This document shows positions 16,907-61,875 of a stretch of DNA of 64,000 bases, in pieces; the stretch's first letter is position 1, and each line of letters opens with the position of its first letter. The notes beneath the pieces are model-generated. The model ran no database searches. It was given only the letters and a program-made list of their open reading frames with translations, and was not told the DNA's origin. A program made the position numbers and the translations under genes. Location: the sequence record PP456879.1, one strand, 5' to 3'.

Positions 16907-16953
16907 CCTTTTTACATTAATTGAAGGTTAAATATCAAGTTAGTAATATACTG
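16907..16953 (-). repeat. 47-nt perfect repeat (promoter core, leader, RBS), copy A
   Basis: identical to 18758-18804. Confidence 0.95.
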
Positions 16954-19297: not shown

Positions 19298-19326
19298 GTA
19301 ATATACCCTTTAAATACATTTGAATA
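19298..19326 (-). promoter_or_regulatory. phiKZ-type early promoter
   Basis: ATTCAAATGTATTTAAAGGG-TATATTAC next to terminator 19337-19358. Confidence 0.85.
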
Positions 19327-24035: not shown

Positions 24036-25199
24036 ATGTCTACTAAATCTCAACTACCAAAGAAAATCTTCAATGTTGCTAAGAGTGATTATCATCTACC
24101 GGAAATTATTCTTGGAGATGATCCAGGTCTACTAGATTCAATCCACACTCATTATCCTAAAATGTGGGAGCTATATAAGCGTCTAAAGATGCTTGATTGG
24201 GATGAGCTAGAATTTGACTTTTCCACTTGTCTAGTAGAATTTGAAACGTGTGATAAATCAACTTATGACATGATGATTAAGACACTGGCCTGGCAATGGG
24301 AAGCTGACTCTGTAGCCAGTCGTTCCATTGTTAATATTCTATCACCTGTCATGACAGATTCACGAGTATGGGCGGGATATGTACGTATTAATGATAATGA
24401 AGACGTACATGCTTTAACTTATTCTGAAATTGTACGTAATAGCTTTAAAGATCCTAAAGTTATTCTAGACGAAATTCTTAGGGTAGAAGAAGCACAAGAA
24501 CGAATGGTTGCAGTAGCCCGCACTATGGGTGAAGCACATGACGCAGTTCATGCGTATGCTCTTAATCAGGTACCCAATGATCAAGAACTTTACAATAAAG
24601 TATTCATGTTCTTCATCGCTCTATATTTCCTAGAACGTATCCAGTTCATGGCATCCTTTGCAGTAACCTTTGCTATTGGTCGTACTGGTGCATTCCAGCA
24701 AATTGCAGCCGCTGTTAAGAAAATTGCCCAAGACGAATTCGAAATCCATGCACAATATGGACAAGAAGTTATTCGTGCACTACTGGCAACTGAACGCGGT
24801 AAACTCGCTTACAGTCAATGTAAAGATAAAATCATTGAACTACTATGGGAAATTGTAAAGACTGAAGTTACCTGGGTTAATTATCTATTCTCTGAAGGTC
24901 GTGAACTAACTGGTGTTAATGCGACTAAACTTATTAACTGGGTACTTTTCAATGCTAATGCCGCAGCAACATTCCTAAGTATTGAAAATGATGTTGTAGA
25001 ACAGTATCAAGTGGAGTTTAAAGAATCAGCTGGATTTGATTTTGTTTGGCCAGAGAAGAACCCACTTCTTTATATGGAAGACTACCTAGATATTTCATCA
25101 ACCCAAGCATCTCCTCAGGAAGAAGAGAAGCCTGATTACATGGTCAACGTTGTAAATGATGTTGGTGAAGAAGAAGAATTTGAGGTTGACTTCTTATGA
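24036..25199 (+). CDS. nrdB: class Ia ribonucleotide reductase beta subunit
   Basis: di-iron ligands WEADS, EDVHALTY (radical Tyr), LERIQF, DEFEIH; C-terminal Tyr. Confidence 0.95.
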   Translation: MSTKSQLPKKIFNVAKSDYHLPEIILGDDPGLLDSIHTHYPKMWELYKRLKMLDWDELEFDFSTCLVEFETCDKSTYDMMIKTLAWQWEADSVASRSIVNILSPVMTDSRVWAGYVRINDNEDVHALTYSEIVRNSFKDPKVILDEILRVEEAQERMVAVARTMGEAHDAVHAYALNQVPNDQELYNKVFMFFIALYFLERIQFMASFAVTFAIGRTGAFQQIAAAVKKIAQDEFEIHAQYGQEVIRALLATERGKLAYSQCKDKIIELLWEIVKTEVTWVNYLFSEGRELTGVNATKLINWVLFNANAAATFLSIENDVVEQYQVEFKESAGFDFVWPEKNPLLYMEDYLDISSTQASPQEEEKPDYMVNVVNDVGEEEEFEVDFL

Positions 25200-25609
25200 T
25201 TAAGATTATCGCATTCGTAGTTTTAATGTGGTCCACTGTCCTATTTGCAGCAACTGAAGTAAAATCAACTACAGATGGTATTATTGCACATTCAGAATGT
25301 CAGCTAGTTGCTAAAGATAGTAGTGTTGTCGGCACTACTGTTGGAGGTGCGGTTGGAGCCACCGCAGGCGCTGTATTAGGTCGAGCAATCTTTGGTAAAT
25401 CTGGAGGTTGGGTAGGTGGTTTAATCGGTGGTGCCGCAGGCGGCGCAGTCGGTAATAATGTTAGTGCTACTGAAACATTTCAATGTAAACTGATTGTTAA
25501 TACAGATGGCAAGCAGTACATGGTTCAAACAGTTACCAATGAAAAACCAAAGGTTGGTGATAAAGTCACTGTTGTTGAAATGAATGATGGTACACGAGAT
25601 ATAATGTAG
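25196..25609 (+). CDS. exported glycine-zipper protein (YcfJ/SlyB-like)
   Basis: signal peptide, GGAVGATAGAVLG...GGLIGGAAGGAVG, C-terminal small beta domain. Confidence 0.7.
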   Translation: MIKIIAFVVLMWSTVLFAATEVKSTTDGIIAHSECQLVAKDSSVVGTTVGGAVGATAGAVLGRAIFGKSGGWVGGLIGGAAGGAVGNNVSATETFQCKLIVNTDGKQYMVQTVTNEKPKVGDKVTVVEMNDGTRDIM

Positions 25610-55441: not shown

Positions 55442-55470
55442 GTAATATACTGTTTAAAATGCTTTAAATA
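55442..55470 (-). promoter_or_regulatory. phiKZ-type early promoter
   Basis: ATTTAAAGCATTTTAAACAG-TATATTAC next to terminator 55489-55509. Confidence 0.85.
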
Positions 55471-58126: not shown

Positions 58127-58148
58127 GTAATATAGATTTCAAAAAAAA
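58127..58148 (-). promoter_or_regulatory. phiKZ-type early promoter
   Basis: TTTTGAAATC-TATATTAC next to hairpin 58161-58181. Confidence 0.7.
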
Positions 58149-58190: not shown

Positions 58191-58298
58191 TTATTTATAT
58201 TTTTTCTTATGAGTGTGGTAAATATAGCTAAATAGCATACCGATTGACATTGATACAGCTACCATACCCACATAGAAAAGTTCATTACTAAGTTGCAT
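58191..58298 (-). CDS. single-pass membrane peptide (35 aa), below track cutoff
   Basis: [43 protein letters not shown]. Confidence 0.6.
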
Positions 58299-58380
58299 TA
58301 GATTTCCTCAAATAGTTTAATTTATCCCACCTAGTTTTAACCGTCCAGTCGGTTAAAAAGAGGACCCGAAGGTCCTCTAA

Positions 58381-58620
58381 TTATTTCTTATAACTCTCAG
58401 GGCATCCCATTTTGAGTTTGCCATCCTTTGGGTCTTCAGCGAATAATACTTCATCTGGACACTTCTTAACAGGAGTGTCCTTCGCCTTATCTTCCCATTC
58501 TACAACAGGCATTTCTAATTTCTTACGAAATTGATACGTATCATAAAGAACATACGTAATCATTCCCATAAGAGAGATTACCCATACCCATGCAACAATT
58601 AGGATGATTCTAGTTATCAT
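58381..58620 (-). CDS. membrane-anchored small protein
   Basis: 79 aa, N-terminal TM, two Cys. Confidence 0.7.
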   Translation of the reverse strand: MITRIILIVAWVWVISLMGMITYVLYDTYQFRKKLEMPVVEWEDKAKDTPVKKCPDEVLFAEDPKDGKLKMGCPESYKK

Positions 58621-58987
58621 ACAACTCCTCGCCGACTATATTGAAACACCCATTACTGAGTTTTTCAGTCAGCATCTCACCAAGATCACTTCCCTCGCTC
58701 TTTGCCAAAAGCTTAAGTGCGGGATCAGTGAGATTTTGGTATATTACATCGACATTATCCAATGCGATATTAATAGCGAGTGCCTTATCACTCTGGTTTT
58801 TATCTATGGCAATGGATAGTTCATCTTGCAGTATTGCATACATCTCCAATGGCTCACCGCCATTAGTGTAGAATTGAACCATATTCTTTGCCAAGCTGTG
58901 CAGCACGTAGCAAGATGACACGGTTACGGGTTGTGCATTAACCGACATTGCTACCATAGTGATAATGAGCGAGAAGACGTATTTCAT
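58610..58987 (-). CDS. secreted two-Cys family member 1
   Basis: signal peptide ...VNA, TVSSC ... NGCFNIVGE. Confidence 0.75.
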   Translation of the reverse strand: MKYVFSLIITMVAMSVNAQPVTVSSCYVLHSLAKNMVQFYTNGGEPLEMYAILQDELSIAIDKNQSDKALAINIALDNVDVIYQNLTDPALKLLAKSEGSDLGEMLTEKLSNGCFNIVGEELYDN

Positions 58988-59019
58988 CCTATTTTCCTTT
59001 TGAAAGTATTCGATATGAA

Positions 59020-59475
59020 TTAAATGAGTTCAACAATTACCATGTGAGTGAATTTCTCACCAATATGCTTCATGCAGTAATTGCCATAATACCCGCTGAT
59101 AAAAGCTGCCAGATTAGGAGTAGTCACATTGTAACCTTGACTACGGATATAATCATGGATCTCTTTACTGTTAAGGTCATTATTGATTTTATTAAGACTA
59201 TTGAATACGAATGTTAACGCAATCCAATTATTGGTATCCAACTCATCTTTGAGTTTAGCAGAGTTGTTGAGCATAAGCACACCAACTTCATCTGCGCTAT
59301 GACCTTCACTCATTCGAAATACAGCTTGTTTAGTAATGGTTTCAACCATTGCACACGACTGCACAGTGAGTTGAGCATCTTTTTTACCAATCTTGATTTC
59401 AGCCATTGCGGTATTGAACATGATACCGGTAATGGCAATGAGACCAGCGAAAGCTGCTGCAATTACATTTTTCAT
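59020..59475 (-). CDS. secreted two-Cys family member 2
   Basis: signal peptide ...AMA, TVQSC ... NYCMKHIGE. Confidence 0.75.
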   Translation of the reverse strand: MKNVIAAAFAGLIAITGIMFNTAMAEIKIGKKDAQLTVQSCAMVETITKQAVFRMSEGHSADEVGVLMLNNSAKLKDELDTNNWIALTFVFNSLNKINNDLNSKEIHDYIRSQGYNVTTPNLAAFISGYYGNYCMKHIGEKFTHMVIVELI

Positions 59476-59492
59476 TTTAAATCCTTCTTCAT

Positions 59493-59876
59493 TTATTTAA
59501 TGGTAAGAATAGTAATTTTTTCAGGATTTACTGGAACTTTAATTTTAGATTTATGTTGGAGAAACTCAACAACCACCATAGACTTATCCATTTTATACAC
59601 TTCACATACTTTGACAAGCCTATCTACTACGCAACCAATTTTACCGGCATTTTGAGAAAAGAAAGATTTTGCTTTTCTAATAGCCTCGCGTTTCTCAAGC
59701 ATTTCCATATGCATATTTTCAATATGTTTATCGCGTTGAACACGATTAAACTTACGCATATGTCGTTCGATCTTACTAATTTCAGAAGAGTGTAATGAAT
59801 AAGCAGCAGCTTCTTTCAGTTTCTCATATACTTCCACTGCCATTACCACGTGATCATCTTCAAAATTTCTTTTCAT
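59493..59876 (-). CDS. hypothetical cytoplasmic protein
   Basis: 127 aa, helical N-terminus, SH3-like C-terminus. Confidence 0.7.
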   Translation of the reverse strand: MKRNFEDDHVVMAVEVYEKLKEAAAYSLHSSEISKIERHMRKFNRVQRDKHIENMHMEMLEKREAIRKAKSFFSQNAGKIGCVVDRLVKVCEVYKMDKSMVVVEFLQHKSKIKVPVNPEKITILTIK

Positions 59877-59889
59877 ATCTATGCCTTTT

Positions 59890-60684
59890 TTACTGTTTGA
59901 TTAAATTTGACACTGCTTCTTGTTTACATTGAGTATTCATCCATAATGCAATGTCTTTGGGTTCTTGTCCAGTTTCCACCATATCGATAATGATACGGGT
60001 ATTACGTTGTGCTTTCTCACGGGCATTTAACATATCAGGATCATTAATAATGAATTCCCTACCCATAACTGGATCTAATCCAATATAAGCTTTAGATGCA
60101 ATAGTTCTCACCATTGCTTCATATTGGTCACATCCACGTTCAGTTAATACAAGGTTATCTGCATTGGCACTACCGCCAAATAGCAAACCTAGGAATCCAT
60201 AGAAAAAAGTGTGACGTATTGTCTTCCAACAAATACGCATCTCTTCATTTTTTGTATAAAGCTTTTCCCAATCAAACATTAAATAGAAACTTTCTTTTTG
60301 GATAGAAGGGTGTAACCAAATAGGTTTAATACTTACTTCAAGAAGTTTACTATTTGGATTCTTACCGATAAAGATAACTTCAACAATGGCTCGTGCTAAA
60401 GCATCTTTTTCTTTACCATTCCATCCAAATTTTATTTCATCAGCCGTAATGTAAAGACGTATTCCATCACCCACGTATTTGGGTAACCAAACAGCTTTAC
60501 CTAGTTGCACTGGAACATCATTAGGGATTCCCCCAACCATCCAGGTGGCCTTGGTGAAATGAATAGCAACATCATCATTCAACCATTTTAGAATAGCTGG
60601 CCTTACCCAACTATCTACCAAATTACCACATGTCAATGCAGCTAGCATAGCCATGAGCATAATGACAATATAGATACTAATCAT
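59890..60684 (-). CDS. fusion ORF; C-terminal 116 aa (from ATG 60240) is two-Cys family member 3
   Basis: internal signal peptide MRICWKTIRHTFFYGFLGLLFGGSANA, TERGC ... TQC. Confidence 0.65.
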   Translation of the reverse strand: MISIYIVIMLMAMLAALTCGNLVDSWVRPAILKWLNDDVAIHFTKATWMVGGIPNDVPVQLGKAVWLPKYVGDGIRLYITADEIKFGWNGKEKDALARAIVEVIFIGKNPNSKLLEVSIKPIWLHPSIQKESFYLMFDWEKLYTKNEEMRICWKTIRHTFFYGFLGLLFGGSANADNLVLTERGCDQYEAMVRTIASKAYIGLDPVMGREFIINDPDMLNAREKAQRNTRIIIDMVETGQEPKDIALWMNTQCKQEAVSNLIKQ

Positions 60685-60687
60685 AGT

Positions 60688-61047
60688 CTACTCCAAGTTA
60701 AATTTAGTACCAATTGCTTCAACACAATTTTCAGCTAACCTATCTAGGATAGCTCCATTGGTAAATCCTTTTCGTTTATTTACTCGAATATCAACTAAGT
60801 TTAACTTGGCATATACCGCACCTGCATAGAACTCCAAGTCATCCATATCCTTACGAGAGATCATGTCTAACTGCATCATTATCTCAAATTGGGATAGGTT
60901 CTTATCATAAAGCTCAGTTGCTTTTTGTGAAAGATTTACTGCCACATTACATGATTTCTTAGTAATACCCACTTCTACAGCGTGGGCAGGCTGACATGCA
61001 ATGGACAGGATTGGCAGGAAAAGGAATAATAGCCAATTCTTAAGCAT
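60688..61047 (-). CDS. secreted two-Cys family member 4
   Basis: signal peptide ...AHA, TKKSC ... ENCVEAIGT. Confidence 0.75.
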   Translation of the reverse strand: MLKNWLLFLFLPILSIACQPAHAVEVGITKKSCNVAVNLSQKATELYDKNLSQFEIMMQLDMISRKDMDDLEFYAGAVYAKLNLVDIRVNKRKGFTNGAILDRLAENCVEAIGTKFNLE

Positions 61048-61059
61048 GTTGTACCTCCA

Positions 61060-61467
61060 TTATTTTAGAGTAAGTGGTTTTGCTTCAAACGCACCTGCCG
61101 CTACACAACGCTGGAAATAACCATCAATGATGAATTTCTCAGGAGTGGTCTTATAGACTTTAGCAGCATTTGTTGCACGTGGCAAACTTGCCTCAATTGC
61201 CATTTTATCTACCTTAGACCATAGGTAAAATAGACCAGTGAGTTCTTCAACTTTAGACTGGTTGGTCTTTAGATCTTTAGTGTTATTAAGGATATAATGA
61301 ATCCTTTCATAAGTCTTCATTTGCACTTCAGTTACAGATGCACCTTTTACAAACAATTCATCTGCCTGTTTTACAAACTCGATGCATGAATCACGATTAG
61401 TGTACATGACAGCCGAGTTAGCAGTGATAGTTACAATAGACAACATAAATACAATTACATATTTCAT
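61060..61467 (-). CDS. secreted two-Cys family member 5
   Basis: signal peptide ...ANS, NRDSC ... QRC. Confidence 0.75.
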   Translation of the reverse strand: MKYVIVFMLSIVTITANSAVMYTNRDSCIEFVKQADELFVKGASVTEVQMKTYERIHYILNNTKDLKTNQSKVEELTGLFYLWSKVDKMAIEASLPRATNAAKVYKTTPEKFIIDGYFQRCVAAGAFEAKPLTLK

Positions 61468-61493
61468 AATGAATTACCTCAAAATTAATTTTA

Positions 61494-61757
61494 TTAACTA
61501 TTGGTTTCACCACGAGTATTGAATTCTAAATCCAATACAACTTTAGTAAATTCTTCCAGTGCACCACCCTCGTAGATGAGTGGGTCACTGTCACCCCGGT
61601 ACATGCTACCTACCGGTACTTGACCACGAAACACCATCAGCATATCGTTTTTTACTATGACATGATGTTCATCCCCGACAGCAATGTCTTGGATGTGTCT
61701 CCAGCGTTCACGCAGTAAGCTGCAAGCGCACCATACGGATTTCAAACGTTCAGTCAT
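61494..61757 (-). CDS. hypothetical protein
   Basis: 87 aa, first gene after early promoter at 61791. Confidence 0.7.
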   Translation of the reverse strand: MTERLKSVWCACSLLRERWRHIQDIAVGDEHHVIVKNDMLMVFRGQVPVGSMYRGDSDPLIYEGGALEEFTKVVLDLEFNTRGETNS

Positions 61758-61790
61758 TGTATTGCCCTCTTGGTTATTAAATTCATATTT

Positions 61791-61819
61791 GTAATATAGC
61801 TTTTTAAATAGTTTAAATA
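61791..61819 (-). promoter_or_regulatory. phiKZ-type early promoter
   Basis: ATTTAAACTATTTAAAAAGC-TATATTAC next to terminator 61838-61857. Confidence 0.85.
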
Positions 61820-61875
61820 CAAAAAAAGATAAATAAAACCCTCCCCGAAGGGAGGGTGTATATTAAGTAATTATT

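Follow-up and report, generated by a model that had tools for sequence, protein, structure and literature searches.

Five small proteins encoded close together in a phiKZ-type jumbo phage, all annotated as hypothetical, raise the question of whether they form one family and, if so, what such a family would do in the infected cell. phiKZ is a model nucleus-forming jumbo phage, and to our knowledge nearly all work on it has concerned the cytoplasm (nucleus, early vesicle and ribosome takeover). The window analyzed here is a stretch of 64,000 nucleotides from record PP456879.1, whose source is the phiKZ-type Pseudomonas jumbo phage KEN51; near-identical records include close relatives such as OMKO1. 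The original prediction, made from this sequence, had described a tandem array of five divergent secreted modules of 116-151 aa at positions 58610-61467. All five are present on the minus strand and correspond to PHIKZ252, PHIKZ251, the C-terminal third of PHIKZ249, PHIKZ248 and PHIKZ247 (Table 1), but the array is interrupted by gp250, and module 3 is a part of gp249 with no separate ORF. We found no functional study of these genes in the literature.

A predicted eight-gene operon behind an early-promoter-like element

The five modules lie in a predicted operon of eight genes that runs from an early-type promoter at 61798 to a terminator at 58355. An early promoter had been proposed upstream of the modules at 61791, and an early-promoter-like motif is indeed present there: TATATTAC (61791-61798, minus strand) sits inside an extended AT-rich motif shared by at least five further sites in the window, near-identical at 55442 and similar at 19298, 16943, 18794, 58127 and 43484. 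We call the element early-promoter-like on the basis of this motif and of the published description of early phiKZ promoters, whose consensus is AT-rich and combines an extended -10 with T-rich sequence upstream (PMC8244752). RNA-seq gave counts for all genes. Export or membrane signals were recognized in the sequences of six of the eight products; gp253, which has the highest amino acid identity to the relative L009 in the operon (96%), is not a family member, yet is predicted to be envelope-targeted too. Sequence inspection found C-terminal YxF-type AlgW-activating motifs in none of the six proteins predicted to be exported, PADLOC models matched none of the eight operon proteins, and no toxin, effector or further enzyme gene was seen near the operon, which is flanked by the HD phosphohydrolase gene and by phage genes annotated as hypothetical.

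Table 1. Positions of the operon genes, their putative signals and the parts of gp249 within the window
Feature	Position	Strand	Description
Predicted intrinsic terminator after gp246 (HD phosphohydrolase)	61838..61857	-	8-bp GC-rich stem, TTCG loop, T-run; closes the upstream unit
phiKZ early-promoter-like element	61791..61828	-	TATATTAC core (61791-61798) plus AT/T-rich upstream part
gp246.1	61494..61757	-	operon gene 1; without export signal; missing from relative L009
gp247	61060..61467	-	135 aa; family member, predicted signal peptide
gp248	60688..61047	-	119 aa; family member, predicted signal peptide
gp249	59890..60684	-	264 aa; residues 149-264 form the 116-aa module 3
gp249 N-terminal hydrophobic segment, residues 1-23	60616..60684	-	KD hydropathy 2.6-3.0; no preceding positive charge
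gp249 N-domain, residues 24-148	60241..60615	-	blocks shared with L009 and L020 are conserved; indels stay in frame
gp249 internal signal-like segment, residues 149-175	60160..60240	-	basic n-region, 11-12-residue hydrophobic core, ANA↓D
gp249 C-terminal module, residues 176-264	59893..60159	-	four predicted helices; Cys185, Cys253
gp250	59493..59876	-	127 aa; no export signal; outside the family; splits the array
gp251	59020..59475	-	151 aa; family member, predicted signal peptide
gp252	58610..58987	-	125 aa; family member, predicted signal peptide
gp253	58381..58620	-	last operon gene; overlaps the gp252 stop; N-terminal TM helix; two Cys-Pro motifs in the C-terminal part
Predicted intrinsic terminator at operon end	58355..58378	-	8-bp stem, TTCG loop, TTTTT; directly 3' of the gp253 stop

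Predicted export signals and a single Cys pair

Each module had been credited with a Sec signal ending in AxA or ANS. A heuristic hydropathy and -3/-1 scan of gp247, gp248, gp251, gp252 and the internal segment of gp249 agrees, finding a hydrophobic segment and a -3/-1 site in all five, with the basic n-region, 7-15-residue hydrophobic core and small -3/-1 residues of Sec-type (SPase I) signals; the predicted sites are VNA↓Q (gp252), AMA↓E (gp251), ANA↓D (gp249 module), AHA↓V (gp248) and ANS↓A (gp247). The further claim of exactly two Cys in each mature part also stands: in the five modules the first is 8-16 residues in from the mature N-terminus and the second 11-17 short of the C-terminus, and exactly two occur in 31 of 31 family members from relatives as well, 68-100 residues apart. 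The motifs proposed around them hold in part. While T/N-x-x-[SG]-C fits all five modules, C-x4-G-[ET] fits only gp248, gp251 and gp252. The supposed G-x-S/P-x-x-E turn is retained as a turn starting 17 residues past the first Cys in gp248, gp251, gp252 and the gp249 module, with Gly at that position (Asn in gp248) and an acidic, then a hydrophobic residue 5-8 residues beyond the turn start; in gp247 it is shifted, with Gly at +14 and Glu at +19 from the first Cys.

Because only two other ORFs among 352 non-overlapping ORFs of the genome, both located elsewhere, combine a signal-like N-terminus with a terminal Cys pair, the five-module pattern exceeds chance. The in silico evidence supports a single family of small helical proteins that are probably exported, retain the Cys pair and are expressed from an early-type promoter.

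Profile evidence for common ancestry

BLASTP pairs among the five are near noise, and PHROGs places each protein in a separate family without assigned function, with gp251 matching the PHROG of gp248 at 2.6e-3. An HMM built from mature gp248 orthologues retrieved gp251 at 1.4e-4, Psa21_2 at 9e-4 and gp252 at 2.4e-3, noise beginning at about 1. When whole phage genomes were searched, a profile of the 'long' subfamily (A9) that contains no gp252 sequence found gp252 at E 1.4e-7 and gp248-like proteins at 3e-4; profile A2 missed distant members, for example a 157-aa protein of Phabio that was recovered by a pattern scan and profile A9. The hhalign comparisons gave P-values of 1.4e-11 for gp251 with the long subfamily, 1.9e-6 for gp251 with gp252, 4.9e-6 for gp248 with the long subfamily and 1.2e-4 for gp247 with PA1C_3, all seven negative controls (gp250 used as control) having P of at least 0.04. 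Against the enlarged family HMM, gp247 scored E 5e-4 across 820 genome ORFs, with the runner-up at 1.1. At the level of sequence, these profile searches demonstrate common ancestry of gp247, gp248, gp251 and gp252.

The four differ in their mature parts. gp251, the phiKZ representative of the long subfamily, has a predicted mature module of 126 aa, and that of gp252 is acidic (107 aa, pI 4.2). In gp247 it comprises 117 aa and five predicted helices, with Cys10 and Cys103 in mature numbering, and from the hhalign score and the alignment PA1C_3 is its probable orthologue. gp248 is the most widely conserved member of the predicted family, with orthologues in phiPA3 (gp303), PA1C, Phabio, Psa21, D6 and RVTF4; C18, P20, C33, C108 and G113 are invariant across six orthologues. 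Behind its signal peptide Cys18 stands in a lipobox-like context (SIAC↓QP), the AHA↓V site being an alternative, and two mature Cys follow. Judged against [LVI][ASTVI][GAS]C placed where the hydrophobic core ends, this context is acceptable in phiKZ, L009, phiPA3, PA1C, Phabio and L022 (IAC, VGC, TGC, VAC) and non-canonical in Psa21, RVTF4, L023 and L024 (TMC, VTC), and the Cys is missing in the gp248-like proteins of L020 and P0021. Churi gp059, a gp248 homologue, is among the proteins listed as found 15 min after infection (PMC11849849).

A family-like module within gp249

The first 23 residues of gp249 are a predicted membrane anchor or signal-anchor, and their equivalents in L009 and L020 are hydrophobic as well; a lipobox at Cys19 was considered and rejected, being non-canonical and not conserved in L020. 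Judging from its conserved blocks and in-frame indels, the N-domain that follows is real coding sequence, with no usable model because its AF2 pLDDT is 30-40. The internal signal-like segment is kept in L009 and also in L020, there without any Met. We rejected translation start at the internal Met149 as the main route, given a poor Shine-Dalgarno and a homologue in L020 that has no Met at this place.

The C-terminal module is the best-conserved portion of gp249. Its model (pLDDT 60-79, shallow MSA) has helices at residues 182-200, 216-227, 229-237 and 242-263, and in BFVD, itself aside, it best matches the gp248 orthologue of phiPA3 (protein 303, prob 1.0) and a 201phi2-1 protein of 113 aa (prob 0.99). 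The full-length model is poor beyond this module, and its VIA matches are driven by long hydrophobic helices. Comparison of the module with the other subfamilies by sequence profiles was not significant (hhalign P 0.01-0.3), and its assignment to the family would have as its basis only the predicted structure, of moderate confidence, and the motifs. For gp247 the best AF2 model reaches pLDDT 90, one of five models being confident with a shallow MSA, and its best non-self BFVD matches are phiKZ-like Pseudomonas phage proteins whose organism and length fit family members. In structure comparison the gp249 model leads to a gp248 orthologue and the gp247 model to phiKZ-like phage proteins, at modest Foldseek E-values to family members (0.007-0.08) and with several BFVD accessions assigned by organism and length only. 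The in silico evidence as a whole points to gp247, gp248, the gp249 C-module, gp251 and gp252 being ancient paralogues of one jumbo-phage-specific family.

Distribution and selection

Among 1.84 billion representative proteins the family had 12 matches, five of which were traced to contigs (35-315 kb) whose gene neighbourhoods resemble that of phiKZ, and the same search did not find it in bacterial genomes. A tblastn search of 50,697 phage records with gp247, gp249, gp251 and gp252 gave nothing outside Phikzvirus, and word-indexed protein searches returned near relatives only. In these searches the family is rare and confined to phiKZ-like jumbo phages, with one to five copies per phage; most relatives examined pair a short member resembling gp248, in which a lipobox-like Cys is frequent, with a long one resembling gp251.

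Between two phikzvirus lineages (a relative about 80% identical, with the same gene order), dN/dS is 0.08-0.16 for all five genes, like their neighbours, and gp250 shows the weakest constraint in the operon (0.23). The five family genes are real and constrained, and they are under purifying selection, not rapid diversification; such values are not the signature of an arms-race arsenal. Of the 'diversified' arsenal that had been proposed, only the sense of ancient divergence remains.

Comparison with known folds and families

The modules had been likened to the HdeA/B chaperones and the Tai4/Rap immunity proteins, which are likewise small, helical and periplasmic and in some cases carry a disulfide. 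We found no such likeness by Pfam, by PDB sequence profile or, for the gp247 model, by Foldseek and VIA-align: HdeA/HdeB gave no match among Pfam models or solved structures, Tai4/Rap were absent from the Foldseek PDB, VIA-align wide and PDB profile matches of the gp247 model and the core-family profile, and, unlike these groups, the family has no cognate effector and was not found in bacteria. Pfam gave no match at E <= 0.1 for the five proteins, nor at E <= 10 for ten family members (SapB, HdeA and PF09691 models included), NCBI-style names offered nothing for the five, and the gp247 model had no significant match in the PDB (Foldseek, VIA-align wide), AFDB clusters or ESM Atlas. By language-model features the nearest Pfam-bearing cluster is PF09691 (gp248 0.68, gp251 0.64, scores in the tool's chance range), the T2SS pilotins PulS/OutS/YacC; these are small helical lipoproteins of Pseudomonadota, but neither a Pfam nor a structural match to them was seen. 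T4 Sp/Imm, T5 Llp and phi80 Cor are alike in being small early phage proteins with envelope targets that are periplasmic or lipoprotein-anchored, as predicted here, and T5 Llp is a lipoprotein bearing a disulfide; they are single genes, in contrast to a five-copy family, and have no sequence or PHROG relationship to it.

Saposins (SAPLIP; SapB_1/SapB_2) are, as far as is known, eukaryotic lipid-binding proteins, and a disulfide joining the first and last helices is a hallmark of their arrangement. They share with the family a size of about 80-130 residues, four to five helices, Cys on the first and last helices and an oxidising compartment (export and disulfide being predicted here), but have three disulfides and six Cys where the family has one Cys pair. 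For the gp248 ESM Atlas model (pTM 0.71) the closest structural neighbours are SapB_1/SapB_2 saposin clusters, with a TM of only about 0.5 (0.53-0.54 over 77 residues); in AFDB clusters the gp247 model has a saposin B-type protein as its third-ranked match (TM 0.39); and the sub-threshold PDB matches of the family profile include four saposin C entries (E 0.7-0.9; query 13-45 on chain 5-37), whose alignments lay the Cys-bearing first helix on the start of the saposin chain. The gp251 Atlas model (pTM 0.81) has no neighbour above TM 0.41. These pointers converge but none is significant, and they hint weakly at a saposin-like arrangement.

Possible functions in the infected cell

We see about an even chance that the locus as a whole is best explained by an exported, disulfide-stapled jumbo-phage family of envelope binders. 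Each copy is, by prediction, an all-helical domain of 90-130 residues with one invariant Cys on the first and one on the last helix; the domains would cross the inner membrane via Sec, and a disulfide made by DsbA between the two Cys would then staple the N-terminal helix to the C-terminal one in saposin-like fashion. The copies may reside at different envelope depths, with gp248 probably lipid-anchored, the gp249 module tethered to, or freed from, the inner membrane through its internal signal, and gp247, gp251 and gp252 presumably soluble in the periplasm. That they act as stoichiometric binders of envelope targets, which take over or shield the envelope of the infected cell within minutes of infection, is a possibility to which we give slightly less than even chances. 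Such binders might exclude superinfecting phages or block envelope enzymes or machines, and would then parallel T4 Sp or T5 Llp in function, and their differing surfaces (pI 4.2 to 8.8) may address different targets. Neither the purifying selection nor the deep conservation speaks particularly for a role in exclusion or immunity, and the inhibitor or immunity function originally put forward is a reasonable guess.

The saposin pointers raise the alternative that the proteins bind or extract lipids (phospholipid, LPS or lipid-linked precursors) or perturb membranes and do not inhibit proteins, and that in this way the infected cell has its envelope, or one of its membrane compartments, remodelled. 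We consider both parts of this unlikely: the three weak, independent pointers from gp248, gp247 and saposin C and the predicted disulfide between first and last helices speak for it, but none of the three is significant, the gp251 model has no comparable neighbour, Pfam SapB models are unmatched, two of the three saposin disulfides would be missing, and small helical bundles resemble many folds. A more specific version, in which the family represents a single-disulfide branch of the saposin fold, carried by phages and handling lipids after Sec delivery to a space of periplasmic topology, strikes us as improbable; that space could include the lumen of the early vesicle holding the injected phiKZ genome, with host-derived membrane remodelled or ruptured, and the copies would work at three depths (outer-membrane-anchored, inner-membrane-tethered and soluble). 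There is likewise a small chance that the modules are not one family, the C-terminal part of gp249 and possibly gp247 being unrelated exported helical domains in which signal and Cys pair arose by convergence. Their models are shallow-MSA predictions, and hhalign comparisons with other subfamilies are poor not just for the gp249 module but also for gp247 against the core subfamilies (P 0.24-0.58); this must be set against the match of gp247 to the enlarged HMM, the BFVD matches of both models to phiKZ-like Pseudomonas phage proteins (with a gp248 orthologue at the top for gp249), the in-register T-x-x-[SG]-C motif and Gly (17 past Cys) of gp249, and the adjacency of the genes within one operon.

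Proteins of the Tai4/Rap or Tsi type, which give immunity to competitor toxins acting in the periplasm (pyocins, T6SS amidase or muramidase effectors), are often small, helical, periplasmic, disulfide-bearing and multi-copy. It is nevertheless very unlikely that the family serves this purpose, considering that neither Tai4/Rap nor another immunity protein was matched in the PDB by Foldseek/VIA-align (gp247 model) or sequence profile, that no effector gene lies nearby, that the search of 1.84e9 proteins turned up no member in a bacterial genome, that the genes are under purifying selection, and that the host is already immune to its own effectors. We regard as similarly remote a role in lysis timing, as periplasmic antiholin-like sensors that delay lysis; the comparison would be with T4 RI, a small helical periplasmic protein made early, and the operon also encodes the small membrane proteins gp253 and gp253.1. 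Five paralogues fit such a role poorly, PHROGs shows no RI similarity, and a 2026 paper on the phiKZ lysis cassette makes no mention of these genes.

Implications

One early operon thus appears to be largely devoted to envelope-directed proteins, as predicted from their signals, five of which come from one previously unrecognised family without cellular relatives. If it is true that the family excludes phages or disables envelope machines, it would be relevant to the design of phage cocktails and to the hold of jumbo phages on the cell over a long infection; should its members prove to bind lipids as saposins do, no earlier example is known from phages of Gram-negative bacteria. On either reading, these small and, by prediction, stable-looking periplasmic binders could reveal vulnerable envelope targets in P. 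aeruginosa.

Gene content and the two-cysteine pattern

The region 58300-61800 is 99.1% identical to phiKZ and 100% identical to vB_Pae10145-KEN51, whose record shares its numbering with the window, and its five modules correspond to PHIKZ252, 251, 249 (C-terminal part), 248 and 247, deposited without exception (5/5) as hypothetical proteins. PHROGs places each of the five proteins in a separate family of unknown function, Pfam and PADLOC gave no match for the array proteins, and our literature search found no paper treating these genes. The original prediction described a tandem array of exported two-Cys proteins, and ORF, hydropathy and Cys scans confirmed that the described ORFs are real and correctly placed. 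Four of the five modules (gp247, gp248, gp251 and gp252) are complete small genes in which a hydrophobic N-terminus is followed by a -3/-1 site and a mature part with exactly two Cys. The array itself stands as five modules but not as five consecutive genes, since the third is residues 149-264 of gp249 (264 aa) and gp250, a protein without an export signal, intervenes. By manual reading of 352 non-overlapping whole-genome ORFs, a comparable signal-like N-terminus and terminal Cys pair occurs in just two others, both elsewhere (see table). Neither was matched by the family HMM or Pfam; they could be very distant family members.

Also within the window is a glycine-zipper protein, a further phage product that is exported or located in the outer membrane. 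Using gp252 in tblastn, we obtained a two-piece match (89% identity) on PP456878.1 (phage KEN19), which may mean that KEN19 carries an indel or frameshift; nearly all other phikzviruses match at 100%.

The gp249 C-module is preceded by a segment resembling a classical signal peptide, in which a basic n-region leads into 11-12 hydrophobic residues and then ANA|D. A separate translation start at this internal segment is improbable: the Shine-Dalgarno sequence, good at other operon genes, is poor at the internal ATG. The fused ORF (261 aa) is retained in a ~72%-identical relative, the divergent phikzvirus contig L009. The 31%-identical homologue on the 196-kb metagenomic contig L020 is likewise built of two parts but lacks a Met at the corresponding point. 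The N-domain matched no family or fold; the positive-inside rule suggests a possible cytoplasmic location for it alongside an exported C-module.

Positions of features in and around the array (KEN51 coordinates)
Feature	Position	Strand	Remarks
gp249 N-domain (residues 24-148)	60241-60615	-	conserved in L009 and L020; models poorly, predicted beta-rich
gp253, last operon gene	58381-58620	-	79 aa; N-terminal TM helix, two Cys-Pro motifs
gp253.1	58191-58298	-	35-aa hydrophobic peptide between two terminators
Second early-promoter-like TATATTAC	58127-58134	-	after gp253.1, ahead of gp254
Further copies of extended early-promoter-like motif tattYaaa...atttaaa...TATATTAC	55442, 43484, 19298, 18794, 16943	-	
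Signal-peptide and glycine-zipper protein	25196-25609	+	137 aa; Pfam Rick_17kDa_Anti 1e-7, Gly-zipper_Omp, weak TraT-like match
Signal-like ORF, Cys near each mature end	74938-75306 (L028:14938-15306)	-	outside window; 122 aa, ends C-x5-G-K
Signal-like ORF, Cys near each mature end	72375-72632 (L028:12375-12632)	-	outside window; 85 aa

Evidence for a single family

Pairwise BLASTP among the five modules is near noise, and ancestry was therefore assessed by profile methods. Orthologues of gp248 are present in phiPA3, PA1C, Phabio, Psa21, D6 and RVTF4, with adjoining genes that include more signal-peptide, two-Cys proteins. Among 456 ORFs, with noise from E ~1, an HMM built on the mature parts of gp248 orthologues retrieved gp251 (1.4e-4), the second Psa21 protein (9e-4) and gp252 (2.4e-3); on iteration a further PA1C array member (PA1C_2) joined, with gp247 next. 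Profile-profile comparison linked gp251 to the long (gp251-like) subfamily (P = 1.4e-11) and to gp252 (P = 1.9e-6), gp248 to the long subfamily (P = 4.9e-6) and gp247 to the third PA1C protein (P = 1.2e-4), against P >= 0.04 for all seven control families of the same loci. A long-subfamily profile built without any gp252 or gp248-like sequence found gp252 at 1.4e-7 and gp248-like proteins at about 3e-4 in whole phage genomes, and the enlarged family HMM gave gp247 an E of 5e-4 among all 820 genome ORFs (runner-up 1.1).

The gp249 module had no significant match to the family by HMM or profile-profile comparison. Its AlphaFold2 model is poor overall, with the C-module a four-helix domain (pLDDT 60-79), and in BFVD its top non-self match is phiPA3 protein 303, named explicitly, which is the gp248 orthologue, followed by a 113-aa protein of 201phi2-1. 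We consider it quite improbable that this module resembles the others through convergence, and we treat the five modules as a single family, as originally predicted, four by sequence statistics and the gp249 module by predicted structure and in-register motifs.

Predicted fold

From a 3-sequence alignment, AlphaFold2 produced five models of gp247, of which one is confident (pLDDT 90; 52-59 for its other four models) and consists of five helices plus short strands at both termini. In BFVD its top non-self matches (TM 0.58-0.69, probability 1.0) are small proteins encoded by Pseudomonas jumbo phages of the phiKZ-like type; judging from organism and length, we read them as PA02 gp251, a 149-aa member of PA1C type, a Phabio protein of 157 aa and the two Psa21 members. 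The Phabio protein was located at 186339-186806, and a profile search confirms that it belongs to the long subfamily.

Searches of the gp247 model by Foldseek and VIA-align against PDB, and against AFDB clusters and the ESM Atlas, gave no significant match, nor did the family profile among PDB sequences. The suggested likeness to HdeA or Tai4/Rap was not borne out: neither these nor pilotins were recovered with the gp247 model or the family profile. Three weak pointers agree on a saposin-like arrangement: the gp248 ESM Atlas model has saposin-like neighbours (TM 0.53), a saposin B-type cluster ranks third for the gp247 model in AFDB clusters, and sub-threshold saposin C matches to the family profile align the Cys-bearing first helix to the saposin chain start. 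Neighbours of the gp251 ESM Atlas model reach TM 0.41 at most. Lipid handling in the manner of saposins is our leading alternative to the target-binding function discussed below, and we regard it as unlikely.

Distribution and selection

Across 1.84 billion representative proteins, the family profile gave only 12 matches at E <= 0.001; five of them were traced, to phiKZ-like neighbourhoods on contigs of 35-315 kb, and fragments named 'Klebsiella' and 'Pseudomonas' are on 200-400-base contigs. We saw one member in phiPA3, two in Phabio (at two loci) and the Psa21 group, three in PA1C and L020, and five in phiKZ. A short (gp248-like) and long pair occurs in PA1C, L020, Psa21, RVTF4, Phabio and phiKZ, and was not found in phiPA3.

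Relative to L009, NG86 dN/dS is 0.086 for gp247, 0.083 for gp249 and 0.157 for gp252, and dN is 0.07-0.12 for gp248 and gp251 with dS saturated; these values are similar to those of flanking genes. The paralogues are old and constrained; the proposed term 'diversified' is apt for their ancient divergence but not for rapid diversification.

In L009, gp246.1 is missing between the HD phosphohydrolase and gp247 (1861-1994). The Psa21-like group (L006, L007, L021, L023 and L024) encodes a conserved ~150-aa cytoplasmic protein (N-terminal motif ...DRYVS...LF.KSLN...) directly upstream of the long member, between the short and long members where both occur; L021 has the long member alone. At this position phiKZ lacks a counterpart.

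Operon and expression

Upstream, gp246 is followed by a terminator and then by TATATTAC, which is embedded in a longer AT-rich motif repeated at several other window sites. This is consistent with phiKZ early promoters as they have been described (PMC8244752) and agrees with the early promoter predicted ahead of the array. An identical 37-base stretch follows each of the copies at 16943 and 18794. A strong terminator lies directly after gp253, which is the operon's most conserved gene (96% aa identity to L009) and also leads it in RNA-seq counts. In both PA1C and Phabio, a small TM protein with C-x6-C comes directly after the array. RNA-seq counts exist for all operon genes, higher in gp252 and gp253 (PMC12571901 supplement), a gp248 homologue of phage Churi is among proteins listed at 15 min post infection (PMC11849849), and a study of co-fractionation proteomics lists all five proteins in its source data.

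Possible function at the envelope

The array is real and its modules share export-type signals, an invariant Cys pair, an early-type operon, purifying selection and restriction to jumbo phages. Family domains would be exported by Sec, and a DsbA-made disulfide would then staple the first and last helices together. Copies may occupy three envelope depths. For gp248 a lipid anchor is proposed because six orthologues all retain Cys18, although certain lineages have a non-canonical lipobox or none. The inner membrane would be where the gp249 module is tethered or cleaved, and gp247, gp251 and gp252 would be soluble. At phiKZ-infection-specific host transcription start sites, the motif of the envelope-stress sigma factor AlgU is enriched (78/423; PMC8244752), and this response could be provoked, or opposed, by phage proteins exported early. 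Function is at candidate level: we tentatively favor, at somewhat below even chances, target-binding proteins that would protect or commandeer the envelope at an early stage of infection, in the manner of T4 Sp and T5 Llp.
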